64,000 nucleotides of DNA from Magallana gigas (taxonomy: Eukaryota): positions 12,338,001 through 12,402,000 of the forward strand of contig NC_088858.1 of NCBI RefSeq assembly GCF_963853765.1, in the 5' to 3' direction. Both the position numbers and the translations under genes were made by a program. Position 1 is the stretch's first letter; each line of letters starts with the position of its first letter. Below, piece by piece: positions 26,101 through 63,976 of the stretch. Below the pieces are notes generated by a model. It saw only the letters and a program-made list of their open reading frames with translations, was not told the origin of the DNA and ran no database searches.

Positions 26101-29100
26101 CAGTTTTTTTTTTACCTATATTCCTTTATCAAACTTTGAATACTAGTATCTCCTTGAATAGAGTTCACATTTTGTTTCTACCGTTATTTCAAACAATGCA
26201 GTAAAATGCAGAAATGTTTAATTGTAGTAATTTAAACTTTTCAACCTGTAGATGAGCTAGATCCTTTTTTACTGATGATGGCTTATTTCAAACTGCATAA
26301 ATCATTACAAACATAGTAAAAAAAAAATATCGATGAATTGTACTCATAACGCGCATCACGAGCCAAAGAGTAGTTCGCTTTTAATAGTTGGAATTGTTTA
26401 TCATGATGGTGTTATTTTTTCTAAAAAAAAAAAAAAATTAGATAGTATCCACTAAAAGTTCAAAGAACAATTTGCAGCAGCATTAGGTAAGAATAAGATT
26501 CAAGAAACTTGTCAAAAAGTAGCAAAATATGTTATTCAAAACTGTCATGGTACTTTTTGAAATAAAAATGTATTCATCGGGTTATCTATAGCTATTTTTG
26601 GGAAGAGGGAATCAGTTGGATTATATATAATGTTGCAAGATGAATGTTTCTATCTGTTATATGCGAATATGAAATAACCAAACTAAAATGAGTCAGCTCG
26701 TAGAGCCATGTTGCAGGTCTCACAACACTATTTTTCCGAAGGTTCACGTCAAAACATTGCTGAGGCAAAATAATTTCCGAATTCCCCTTCGTTTTTAGGG
26801 GTTTTCCGCAAGCAACAGGGACTGTACTTTTTATGAGATGAAAAACAACGTGTAAAATGCCTGATTTTCCCACCTTTGTAAAAATACGAGGTCACTTGAA
26901 TTTTTGATGCCAGTTCTTTCGGGCGGGGGGGGGGGGGGGGGGTGAAAGGGCTCGAACATGATTTTCAAGCACATGTGTAACTTTGATGTAAACAAACTCT
27001 CGTGCCTTTGCAGTGTGTTTTTGCTACTTAATTGGTCAGGAACAATTGTTTTAAAAGTTGTAAAGAGAGATTTTCCCAGAAAGTTGTTTTCAACTCGCTA
27101 CCCGTGTCTAAAGTTGCGTAATTTTGGTAAAAATATACTAGTATAGTAAAAATAAATAGTGGTGTGAAACCTTAAGAAATTGTTCATGGCCTATGATCAG
27201 CTGCAATAAACAGACTGAGACTTCCAGAGCACCTGGCTTTGCTACTTTCACTTTCGGATTCCATTGTTTGTTAAAGGTATCACACCGGTAATCGGCCAAT
27301 CAAAATGAACTTAGTCAATTGTAGTTCCATATATACTTCAGAATTATTTTTTTCCTTGACTGCATTTTTACATTTTCCTTTACTCAGTTTTAAAAATTTT
27401 TGTACCACTGAGTAGGATATTTCATGTATTTTGTTAGGTGATGATCTTTTTTCACAGGGACTACTTCTTTCAGGGCACATGCAGCAGCTTCCTGGGGAGT
27501 GTGCAGTCTATTTACATACAAATGGAAAACACGTGGTTTTGAGGGTAGACCTGTTTGGAGCTAGATATTTTGAGAAAATGCAGTATCGCTTGCCCTTTTT
27601 ATGGTGTTAGCTGATGAGATAGGTAACAAATAACATTTCCTCCGAATATTTTGTCATGAAAAATACAAAATTTATGATATTTAAGAATTTTTTCCCCTCT
27701 ATAGTGTTATATAGTGAAAACAATTACCGGTGTGATACCTTGATGCAATTATTGATCTTGATCCCGACTTAAATTTGACTTTTTTAGCTTCTTTGTTACA
27801 TCATGTCAATCATATCAATGTATTCATTTGAAATAGACAACAACATAAAAATCATTATTACAAATTAAATTTACAATCAAAAGCTTGGTTTCAATTGTAA
27901 ATACATCATGGTATTTTTCTTCTAAAAGGCATGCATACACTATTTAAATTTTTGGAAAGTTATGGACAGTAATGTTTGTAAACTGCGCGACATTTATTTT
28001 ATACTATTAGAACAACACCTATTCAAAACCCTAACTGTAAAGTATATCATGAAATAATTGTTTTTTCTCAATCTTTGAATGATATAAGGATTCTTTTTTT
28101 TTATTTTAATGTTGTAAATATTAAGGAATTCGCAAATATTTCAAGAAAGAGGTCTTTCATTTTTTGGCACTTATAAAAAAACCAGCTTCCCATCCTTACA
28201 TTAATTAGGACACTGTAGATATCTTTATATTTTAAAAAGCTTAACAAAAACGTAGGTTACTTAAATATTAAAAAAGATAACCAAACAAAAATGAAAATAA
28301 ACAACAACAAAAGAAAACAATAAAACTATCGCTTCAGACAATATACGTTAATGACTTGAAAAAAGCCAAACTTTATCTCCGTGTTTTACACACGTCAGTT
28401 TAAAACGTAAAAATATGCATCGAATCCATAAAGAGAGGCAGTATTATATTCTTAAGTCATAACATTTTCTTTCAGTCAATTTAATGATATGGTGTTGTTC
28501 AAACTTTCATTGCTATATCATTATAACTAATGACTATAACTTTGTCAAAATAATACATAAAAGGCTGAAGAGTCTCTTTATATAAAATTACAAAATGTAA
28601 ATTATCACACATGCACTTCAATCTGTGCCTTAAGATGTGATTTGAAAGATTTACCTTTCCTCCGACAACTGCCTATTCCTTTGGTGGATTTGCATGTCTC
28701 TCCTCTGCCACAACTGTTTCCGACCATGACAGCTACAGGTGTCCCGCCCACCAACTTGCAGGACATTTTTACATTGCAGTTCTTGGAGAGAATGGAGGTT
28801 CCTTGCTGTAATCAGAAATATGATGCAGTCAAAACACAAGTGTCCTTGTGGAGAAAGATAGCAATACAGCCTGATTTTCTTGACAATCGGTGGACTTTGG
28901 GTTTACTCACTGGATAATAGCGACCTTGCATCATGCATCCACACTCGCTGTACGGCACACACTTATCTCCCTCTCTGACGTAACCTTTCTTGCATTGGCA
29001 ACCGGCGATATCGACATCGGTGCAGGTATCTTCTGATTTCGGCGACTGACAAGTGTTAGGACATCCACTTCCATCTTCCACGTACTCCTCGTTTTCTTGG

Positions 29101-63976: not shown

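Follow-up and report, generated by a model that had tools for sequence, protein, structure and literature searches.

What kind of protein is encoded by an array of near-identical 4-kb exon cassettes, each of which combines a GDPH-bearing VWD domain with a lectin-like module? The question arises in a window of 64,000 nucleotides from the oyster Magallana gigas, the whole stretch of DNA analysed here, for which an earlier note had proposed a self-cleaving lectin–mucin polyprotein. The reading that we favour, with a probability of roughly 0.6, is that the locus is a genuine oyster gene, that it is expressed, and that its giant secreted product is of the FCGBP/zonadhesin type, a tether-nicked, cationic and multivalent lectin-like protein of a gel or adhesive. 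Cleavage, tethering and sugar binding are all three properties that we infer for the oyster protein.

Architecture and transcription of the locus

A direct repeat of 3,983–3,987 bp (mostly 3,985 or 3,986) occurs nine times on the minus strand between positions 28,642 and 63,976, with 97–100% identity per 300-nt block. Tandem Repeats Finder, with a longest period of 500, gave no match to this ~4-kb array, which was recovered by a direct-repeat search. Every unit holds seven exons on the minus strand, with the lengths listed in Table 1 and a total of 1,608 nt (536 aa). The end points that the earlier note gave are exact, 63976 being the first base of the 261-bp exon and 28655 the last base of the final 151-bp exon. 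The nine cassettes do join into a single frame; their number and their length of 536 aa stand, but they are not identical, differing by 0–4 residues from the commonest form. The count of ‘at least nine’ was well chosen, as four further cassettes lie beyond the window, followed by an extra N-terminal module and a signal-peptide exon. The gene thus has 13 cassettes, the window containing cassettes 5–13. Genome-wide, the 261-bp exon is found in 13 copies plus one diverged copy, all of them at this locus.

Table 1. Positions of the cassettes, of the parts of one reference cassette (exons B to A) and of the downstream modules in the window
Feature	Position	Strand	Remarks
Window cassettes 5–13	28655..63976	-	63 joined exons, 4,823 aa, no stop codon, nine GDPH motifs
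Cassette 5	60540..63976	-	first base of 261-bp exon to last base of 151-bp exon
Following cassettes (first four)	56554-59992, 52568-56006, 48582-52020, 44596-48034	-	exon model
Following cassettes (last four)	40611-44048, 36626-40063, 32640-36078, 28655-32092	-	exon model
Exon B, DUF3011/ADEL-like module	47774..48034	-	261 nt, 5 Cys, pI ~10, phase 1 at both ends
Exon C, EGF-like module	47548..47649	-	102 nt, 5 Cys; one canonical EGF cysteine missing
Exon D, VWD first half	45994..46235	-	242 nt; begins C-R-A-S-G-D-P-H-Y
GDPH codons	46201..46212	-	read from sequence; expected Asp|Pro break between 46207 and 46206
Intron within VWD	45895..45993	-	99 nt, in frame, no stop
Exon E, VWD second half	45569..45894	-	326 nt, contains G-I-C-G-D-C-N-G
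Exon F, C8 domain	45167..45480	-	314 nt; Pfam
Exon G, TIL domain	44852..45063	-	212 nt; Pfam
Exon A, Cys-rich, E/TILa position	44596..44746	-	151 nt, 6 Cys; no Pfam or PDB sequence match
Diverged 14th module	19730..22233	-	no lectin-like exon, no GDPH
14th module exons, first part	EGF 22233-22129; VWD 21874-21645 + 21351-21089	-
14th module exons, rest	C8 20881-20592; TIL 20404-20193; E-like 19916-19730	-
About 11 EGF-like exons	1476..5161	-	phase 1 at both ends
15th VWD (no GDPH) and C8	67..1422	-	TIL, E-like and final Cys-rich, stop-ending exon just before the window

The borders of the cassette exons are AG/GT, with the single exception of a GC donor after 56810. For the C8 exon, an acceptor at 45505 was discarded: it gives a stop, whereas with 45480 the frame stays open, the exon lengths add up to 1,608 nt and the RNA joints agree. 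All seven splice joints are present in contigs from RNA runs at exactly the modelled borders; these joints come from short-read contigs, and the reading of all 13 cassettes in one frame is a genomic model. Transcripts include the 261-bp exon, joined on both sides (47649>47774 and 48034>48582), and one RNA contig of 1,638 nt crosses from one cassette into the next. The 99-nt intron within the VWD is removed in RNA runs X5 and X7 and kept in one X6 contig. RNA variants at 44654, 44683, 45754 and 46000 fall on sites where the units differ from one another, which indicates that several cassettes are transcribed. The order DUF3011-like, EGF-like, VWD(GDPH), C8, TIL and E-like in one long minus-strand frame is upheld, and the cassette is transcribed and spliced as had been proposed. 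The exon order E-like, lectin-like, EGF, VWD(GDPH) is also found on three contigs from other sources.

Public gene models apparently hold the locus as fragments only. XP_034326093.1 (C. gigas, 141 aa) matches almost perfectly the last part of exon B followed by exons C and D, with the B>C>D joins as modelled. This fragmentary model was misleadingly named ‘BMP-binding endothelial regulator protein-like’ by automatic annotation, and has neither the repeat array nor a lectin-like domain call. A pediveliger-specific cluster of ‘IgGFc-binding protein (zonadhesin-like)’ genes, CGI_10010553-57, has been described in C. gigas (PMC6337334); we mention the locus as a candidate equivalent of this cluster, as a lead only.

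The full model comprises 100 exons and about 7,542 aa, with 13 GDPH motifs and no stop; the complete protein probably has a length of about 8,600 aa. A TATA-like box lies upstream of the signal-peptide exon, an extra pair of lectin-like and EGF-like modules stands between the signal peptide and cassette 1, and in the genomic model 13 + 1 assemblies follow the signal-peptide exon in one open frame. The diverged 14th module has the same intron phases as the cassettes and continues in frame from 28655. A separate gene start between the array and this D assembly was considered and rejected, as no exon with a Met, a hydrophobic stretch and a phase-1 donor occurs there; the Met and hydrophobic-exon scan does recover the true first exon of the gene. 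The run of about 11 EGF-like exons probably belongs to the cassette gene. Its continuity with the gene, and that of the 15th VWD, is judged from intron phases, and a separate start ahead of the EGF run, for instance near 10193, is possible. The final Cys-rich exon (L008:8567-8869), considered as a possible counterpart of the C-terminal cystine knot of gel-forming mucins (MUC2/MUC5AC), has no match in Pfam and is a candidate member of the gene.

The module encoded by the 261-bp exon

DUF3011 is a large, mostly bacterial family, with an activity known for a single branch, the animal lectins AKL/ADEL. The description of the 261-bp exon as DUF3011-like holds as a distant kinship, for which five lines of evidence argue, but it falls short of the Pfam gathering score: PF11218 matches the exon with 13.5 bits (E 0.069), where 25 bits are required. 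Three of four related copies match PF11218, at best with E 8.6e-4. Among 1.84 billion proteins searched with phmmer, the sole match outside mollusc-like gene fragments was a bacterial protein with six DUF3011 repeats (E 1.6e-4), and a search of proteins with the domain profile added one fragment and nothing else. Comparison of profiles with hhalign gave a probability of 92.6% for DUF3011 (E 4.5e-07), and the language-model (Atlas) features of the module point at DUF3011 clusters. The module has the four-cysteine repeat with a C-terminal G-C-R-x-x-F motif; C13, C27, C52, G74, C75 and F79 show no variation among the oyster-like copies and the six bacterial repeats.

Folded alone by AF2, the module reached a pLDDT of 90.9, with an input alignment that included bacterial DUF3011 repeats and biases the model towards that fold. 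Foldseek matched this model to the lectin ADEL with a probability of 1.0 (TM 0.64–0.66, 24–25% identity), both sides being predicted models, and to many DUF3011 proteins alongside ADEL. Among solved structures, the sequence search of the PDB with the lectin-like exon returned chance matches to mucolipin-2 only, and Foldseek against the PDB gave nothing below E 1e-3. In a VIA-align comparison with 48,161 chains the highest Z was 5.8, under what usually counts as noise; the chains concerned, such as phage tailspike ends, discoidin I and Helix pomatia agglutinin, are generic beta-sandwiches and were discounted as evidence. We found no solved DUF3011/ADEL structure or mapped binding site.

Galacturonic acid is the ligand of AKL, a lectin of the DUF3011 family, and sugar binding within the family has been shown in a single animal branch, AKL/ADEL (PMC5484111). 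By analogy, the oyster module is a putative glycan binder. The same gene, cleaved in the same way, could instead carry a module that is not a lectin, a basic structural spacer or a protein binder with purely electrostatic affinity for glycans; we consider this rather unlikely. A non-lectin role would suit a module that scores under the Pfam cut-off, is only 24–25% identical to ADEL, is very basic (pI about 10, against 9.2 for the whole cassette) and belongs to a family with sugar binding shown for that one branch. The module also diverges far faster than the neighbouring VWD, with identities between sources of 33–43% versus 76–82%, a rate that fits a recognition domain but also a loosely constrained spacer. 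Against a mere spacer speak the family's four cysteines and its G-C-R-G-x-F motif, none of which varies between oyster-like copies and bacterial repeats, the retention of the module throughout the cassettes and on contigs of other origin, and the confident fold match to ADEL.

The neighbouring exon C, with five cysteines, is called EGF-like from its cysteine pattern: EGF_3 matches it with 15 bits against a cut-off of 28.5 (E 0.031), and its PDB matches, to EGF modules of NELL1 and LDLR, are weak. Exon B opens with E-K-C, like the ordinary EGF exons downstream. The DUF3011/ADEL domain might accordingly be nested in a split EGF, with Cys 1 in exon B and five in exon C, within a nicked cationic chain of 13 units held by single disulfides, which reduction or thiol exchange could separate on demand; we regard this combination as doubtful. 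If true, it would represent a novel design for a multivalent glycan binder that can be switched, of interest for oyster mucus, particle capture and larval cement.

Predicted GDPH cleavage and tethering of the fragments

The VWD, C8 and TIL calls are solid at the level of sequence. In Pfam, the VWD (PF00094) scores 96.8 bits (E 2.1e-27; cut-off 22.9), its two exon halves also matching separately, C8 scores 31.9 bits against 23.7 (E 1.6e-07) and TIL 40.8 bits against 24.5 (E 2.5e-10). The 151-nt exon termed ‘TILa’ or E-like gave no Pfam match up to E 10 and no PDB sequence match, and owes its name to its cysteine pattern. The best solved relative is FCGBP (8rde_A, E 2.2e-68). In the alignment with 8rde_A and 8r0t_A, the GDPH context is nearly the same as in the cleaved FCGBP vWD1 (C-R-A-S-G-D-P-H-Y versus C-R-A-Q-G-D-P-H-Y). 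Both tether cysteines are kept, one five residues before the Asp and the other in G-x-C-G, their pairing being taken from FCGBP (PMC8267560). The Asp and the His of GDPH, needed in FCGBP D10, are both present.

Cleavage of GDPH in FCGBP vWD1 is experimental; the GDPH sites of this protein are all cleaved in the ER, a single disulfide (C472–C611) holds the fragments, and the Asp anhydride is buried and hydrolysed by water, no cross-linked partners having been found (PMC8267560). The cleavage needs Asp and His, and the domain gains stability from it (PMC10880436). By analogy, self-cleavage at GD|PH is likely in the oyster protein. The predicted fragment has the 536 aa anticipated, with a mass of 58.8 kDa. 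The cleaved pieces should remain joined through one conserved disulfide, and cross-linking via the cleaved Asp is unlikely.

These considerations weaken the view of the locus as a polyprotein that gives free units and a reactive cross-linker. In its full form, this view predicts 13 free and identical 59-kDa lectin units, each with a new C-terminal Asp anhydride that couples to glycans or proteins as in ITIH. The 13 GDPH motifs in a cleavage-competent context, a fragment of exactly one cassette and the anhydride chemistry established for ITIH heavy chains (summarised in PMC8267560) would all accommodate it. We nevertheless think it improbable: the nearest solved relative, FCGBP, keeps its fragments disulfide-linked and its anhydride buried and hydrolysed, and yielded no cross-linked partner when studied (PMC8267560), and the oyster VWD has conserved both tether cysteines. 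The name ‘mucin’ has to be abandoned as well, since the minus strand across 144 kb contains no open stretch with at least 20 S/T/P per 40 aa, the maximum in the cassette being 16/40.

The favoured reading, a tether-nicked FCGBP-type protein, would work as follows. The protein would consist of a signal peptide, a lectin-like and EGF-like pair, 13 cassettes, one or two D assemblies without GDPH and an EGF run. Early in secretion every VWD that bears the motif would cut itself at Asp|Pro, as in FCGBP, and the 58.8-kDa pieces, held by one disulfide per VWD, would be secreted as a nicked beads-on-a-string chain that presents 14 cationic lectin-like modules. The glycans that these modules may bind are anionic ones, for example polysaccharides that are sulfated or contain uronic acids, and the binding could give cohesion to mucus or to an adhesive gel of larvae or adults, or serve to capture particles and microbes. 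Reduction of the single disulfides would separate the chain into identical units.

Array uniformity, known relatives and significance

The array units lie head to tail and are 99.6–99.95% identical, introns included. Between units, exons vary as much as introns do, with 13 variable sites in 1,608 versus 17 in 2,374 (p = 0.85). Plausible origins include a very recent tandem duplication of a 4-kb genomic unit or its upkeep by ongoing homogenisation, and mis-assembly may affect the copy number in so uniform an array. That the array as a whole was created by the assembly, or is a duplication in decay and without function, its giant ORF being biologically meaningless, is hardly credible: its uniformity, the equal conservation of exons and introns and the difficulty of assembling such arrays would be compatible with this, but the 91 cassette exons contain no stop or frameshift, the splice sites are all intact across the window cassettes, spliced RNA contigs occur at depth in at least three studies with unit-specific variants, the units carry distinct variants and are therefore not mere assembler copies, and related contigs from other sources have the same architecture.

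Like FCGBP and zonadhesin-like proteins, the predicted oyster protein is secreted and Cys-rich, with many tandem VWD-C8-TIL-E assemblies. FCGBP has 13 VWDs, 11 of them with GDPH, and the oyster gene 15, 13 of them with GDPH, the 15th being assigned by intron phase. The two share a near-identical cleavage-site motif, conserved tether cysteines and the absence of a mucin PTS domain. In contrast to FCGBP, the oyster protein has extra DUF3011/ADEL-like and EGF-like modules between the D assemblies in every repeat, its repeats are near-identical in DNA, introns too, and it is predicted to be strongly basic; it lacks the FCGBP N-terminal domain and has an EGF-repeat run.

The sea hare egg lectins AKL/ADEL (PMC5484111; Swiss-Prot C0HK25) are, like the oyster protein, molluscan and secreted, and share with it a small all-beta four-cysteine domain with a C-terminal G-C-x-x-x-F. 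They consist of three tandem domains alone, in about 218 aa, whereas the oyster gene has one domain, with a fifth cysteine, per cassette of a giant protein. AKL binds galacturonic acid, whereas the oyster module, below the Pfam cut-off, is a putative lectin known from its sequence. A third group, Sfp1 of a sea star and Mlig-ap1 of a flatworm, comprises secreted proteins of great size and rich in Cys that give cohesion to temporary adhesives of marine animals and combine lectin domains, VWD/C8/TIL and EGF repeats (PMC9382459, PMC6410801). Mlig-ap1 is highly cationic and blocked by polyanions (PMC6410801). Their lectin domains belong to different types (galactose-binding or C-type), and they have one or a few D assemblies compared with the 13-fold cassette array of the oyster; the oyster protein is not their orthologue by sequence, and adhesion is a candidate role for it. 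The suggestion that no FCGBP-type protein with a lectin-like domain was known thus has to be narrowed: lectin, D assembly and EGF occur together in Sfp1 and Mlig-ap1, but neither has this type of lectin or one per repeat. We found no published description of a self-cleaving VWD assembly combined with a DUF3011/ADEL-like module in each repeat.

What FCGBP does, and what the cleavage of its GDPH sites is for, has yet to be established (PMC8267560). If our reading is true, the oyster protein would be an invertebrate counterpart for FCGBP biology in which each cleaved unit bears an identifiable binding module, and controlled dissociation through single disulfides therefore becomes testable. It would also be the first reported use of DUF3011 as a repeated module in a giant extracellular matrix protein, and a natural 14-valent display of a DUF3011-like domain. 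The locus itself is a clean case of a 4-kb exon-cassette array held at more than 99.6% identity. The mucus of oysters and the cement of their larvae are important for feeding, pathogen defence and settlement in aquaculture; a self-nicking, cationic, lectin-bearing cohesive protein would be plausible in either, and may offer a template for biomaterials.

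The cassette array and the gene that contains it

Over the last part of the window, from 28 kb to its end, the G+C content oscillates roughly every 4 kb, and a repeat search found nine direct copies spaced 3,983–3,987 bp start to start, with 97–100% identity per 300-nt block. In a six-frame reading, the long cysteine-rich open stretches of one unit all fell on the minus strand, and the exon borders read from the DNA give seven exons per unit, in total 1,608 nt or 536 aa (table). AG/GT borders are present at 62 of the 63 exon copies in the window, the sole exception being a GC donor; joined together, the 63 exons form an uninterrupted frame of 4,823 aa that includes nine GDPH motifs. 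The earlier note had placed at least nine identical cassettes at 28655–63976. These end points coincide exactly with exon ends and the nine in-frame copies are confirmed, but the cassettes are nearly, not fully, identical, with 0–4 residue differences among them. We could also extend this observation beyond the window.

Features of the locus, with window coordinates unless stated (all on the minus strand except where the strand cell is empty) and the joints seen in RNA
Feature	Coordinates	Strand	RNA joint	Remark
Lectin-like exon, reference unit	48034-47774	-	48034>48582	261 bp
EGF-like exon	47649-47548	-	47649>47774	
VWD exon, first	46235-45994	-	46235>47548	
VWD exon, second	45894-45569	-	45894>45994	
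C8 exon	45480-45167	-	45480>45569	
TIL exon	45063-44852	-	45063>45167	
E-like exon	44746-44596	-	44746>44852	
VWD-internal intron	45895-45993	-		99 nt, same place in every unit
GC donor	56808-56809	-		in place of GT, after TIL exon 57021-56810; exon unchanged
(AT)n microsatellite	20030-20100			long; 14th-module intron between TIL and E-like exons
Non-LTR retrotransposon	11626-16535	-		large intron or spacer downstream of 14th module
Last Cys-rich open frame	L008:8567-8869	-		L008, flank on the gene's 3' side; ~1.1-1.4 kb before window start
Extra 2.4 kb, first cassette	L002 ~2,000-4,700			L002, flank on the gene's 5' side; extended coordinates ~76,000-78,700
Similar open frames in the extra 2.4 kb (extended coordinates)	77922-77722, 77789-77560			

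The 564-Mb, 29-contig assembly, in which the window lies at C6:12338001-12402000, contains 13 copies of the 261-bp exon and one 37%-identical copy directly upstream; the domain was not found anywhere else in it. In the flanking sequence, the gene model begins at a Met that leads into a hydrophobic, signal-like segment; a TATA-like box lies ~55 nt upstream. Next come the diverged lectin-like exon, an EGF-like exon and 13 cassettes. An intron of the first cassette is larger by 2.4 kb (spacing to the second cassette 6,348 bp versus the usual 3,986 bp), the extra sequence containing an internal duplication. After the cassettes comes a 14th module (EGF, VWD without GDPH, C8, TIL and an E-like exon) with intron phases exactly as in the cassettes, and no alternative first exon was found between it and the array. 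From the Met through the 14th module, 100 exons encode ~7,542 aa with no stop and 13 GDPH motifs.

Further downstream, beyond a large intron with a LINE, lie ~11 EGF exons, a 15th assembly (VWD-C8-TIL-E) that also lacks GDPH, and a final Cys-rich exon with a stop codon at its end; all are phase-compatible and are candidate parts of the same transcript. In the retrotransposon, a 275-aa ORF1-like frame precedes one of 800 aa that encodes an endonuclease/exonuclease/phosphatase domain plus a reverse transcriptase (RVT_1, E 1.9e-37), and more open frames reach the element's downstream end. The last Cys-rich frame (101 aa, 8 Cys, stop) matched no Pfam family and may represent the C-terminal domain of the gene; the C-terminal domains of FCGBP form a disulfide-linked dimer (PMC11796319).

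Whole units differ by 2–17 substitutions per 3,986 bp, and variable sites are equally frequent in exons (13/1,608) and introns (17/2,374; p = 0.85). Selection on the protein therefore does not account for the uniformity, which reflects duplication in the very recent past or continuing homogenisation, and the 13-fold array is unusually young.

Transcription and splicing

The unit is present in public runs labelled oyster, and several RNA runs contain ~0.33–0.40 of its sampled words, for comparison with an exon share of 0.40. Contigs of two metatranscriptome runs and of a third run, aligned to 44560-48760, gave seven joints (table), all GT..AG on the minus strand, with intron bins near zero. One RNA contig of 1,638 nt starts at the end of one cassette, covers all of the following one and reaches into a third, indicating that cassettes are spliced head to tail, and RNA variants at 44654, 44683, 45754 and 46000 are sites that differ between genomic units, so more than one cassette is transcribed. 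The 261-bp exon, whose absence from transcripts would have argued against the proposed protein, is included in these contigs. The 99-nt intron inside VWD is in frame and stop-free; it is retained in contigs of one RNA run and spliced out in two others. The retained form would lengthen the VWD domain by 33 residues and could be either a minor isoform or RNA not yet spliced. In public ORF calls, P0007 among them, the intron is read as coding sequence.

Domains of the cassette and probable kinship of the lectin-like module

VWD, C8 and TIL score above Pfam cut-offs, and among solved proteins FCGBP chains come closest (8rde_A, E 2.2e-68), ahead of VWF and mucins. The EGF-like exon, with five Cys, is assigned by cysteine pattern only, as is the E-like exon, for which no match was found. 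The minus strand has no Pro/Thr/Ser-rich region across 144 kb; the protein is therefore FCGBP-like and not the mucin suggested earlier.

The earlier DUF3011-like assignment of the 261-bp exon falls below the Pfam cut-off (E 0.069), but several lines of evidence support its product as a distant relative of that family. Profile-versus-profile comparison with DUF3011 gave 92.6% probability (E 4.5e-07), three of four related copies match PF11218 in Pfam (best E 8.6e-4), and language-model features point to DUF3011 clusters only. An exhaustive HMMER search of 1.84 billion representatives returned five matches, four of them short gene fragments of oyster-like DNA and the fifth a bacterial protein with six DUF3011 repeats (E 1.6e-4). 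Four family cysteines and a G-C-R-x-x-F motif are invariant. An AlphaFold model built from a DUF3011-containing alignment is confident (pLDDT 90.9) and all-beta; among 550,129 Swiss-Prot models, Foldseek ranked the lectin ADEL of Aplysia dactylomela second (probability 1.0, TM 0.64, 24% identity), and the cluster library gave many DUF3011 proteins, ADEL once more and several uncharacterised entries. No solved structure had this fold at a convincing score. ADEL shares 96% identity with AKL, an egg lectin that binds galacturonic acid and was the first DUF3011 member to have its activity known (PMC5484111); surveys already list DUF3011 lectins as a lectin class (PMC8878817). With 19 K/R versus 6 D/E and a pI of ~10, the module would suit an acidic sugar.

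Two further groups match the fold model: the C-terminal 70 residues of the Arabidopsis polygalacturonase QRT3 (TM 0.51), an enzyme that acts on the polymer of the sugar bound by AKL, and several AlphaFold DB entries that are uncharacterised, one of which carries the name of an SRCR-domain protein. Other architectures may therefore contain the domain.

The fifth Cys of the module lies in an E-K-C start resembling those of ordinary EGF exons, the next EGF-like exon is one Cys short, and this 5+5 pattern is kept in all copies. A disulfide may link the two exon products, perhaps with the lectin-like domain inserted into a split EGF module.

The order E-like, lectin-like, EGF-like, VWD with GDPH recurs in other samples, on three short contigs that come from a Logan assembly, an ENA metagenome and a JGI metagenome, with VWD 76–82% identical to that of the window and the lectin-like exon only 33–43%. 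Consequently, the architecture predates the array, and the lectin-like module is its fastest-evolving part. Among public proteins, just one with a name was found, XP_034326093.1; this 141-aa fragment from C. gigas, annotated as BMPER-like, joins the lectin-like, EGF-like and first VWD exons.

Probable cleavage and tethering, and possible role

The cassette motif C-R-A-S-G-D-P-H-Y-K-T-Y-D-G aligns residue by residue with C-R-A-Q-G-D-P-H-Y-T-T-F-D-G of FCGBP vWD1, which is cleaved (PMC8267560), and the Asp and His needed for GDPH cleavage (PMC10880436) are present. By analogy, cleavage at all 13 sites is likely. In FCGBP a single disulfide keeps the fragments together, pairing the Cys of G-L-C-G with the Cys located five residues ahead of the Asp, and the anhydride is hydrolysed, with no covalent partner found (PMC8267560). 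Both tether cysteines are conserved in the oyster cassettes. The most likely product would be a nicked, still disulfide-tethered chain, with the free units or cross-linker envisaged in the earlier note the less likely variant; reduction would release units of 536 aa (58.8 kDa, pI 9.2), running from P-H-Y to A-S-G-D. The interpretation in the earlier note is, overall, partly supported.

With one lectin-like module per unit, the chain could act as a multivalent binder for mucus or an adhesive gel. Functional analogues are Sfp1 of sea stars, auto-cleaved and with lectin, VWD and EGF domains (PMC9382459), and the cationic Mlig-ap1 of flatworms, with C-type lectin, D assembly and EGF (PMC6410801). 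For the oyster larval adhesive, the pediveliger-specific candidates include FCGBP-like genes that carry VWD and EGF domains (PMC6337334). Judged by its predicted architecture, the gene is a variant form of the FCGBP/zonadhesin type, distinguished by an ADEL/DUF3011-like module in every repeat and by its young 13-fold array.
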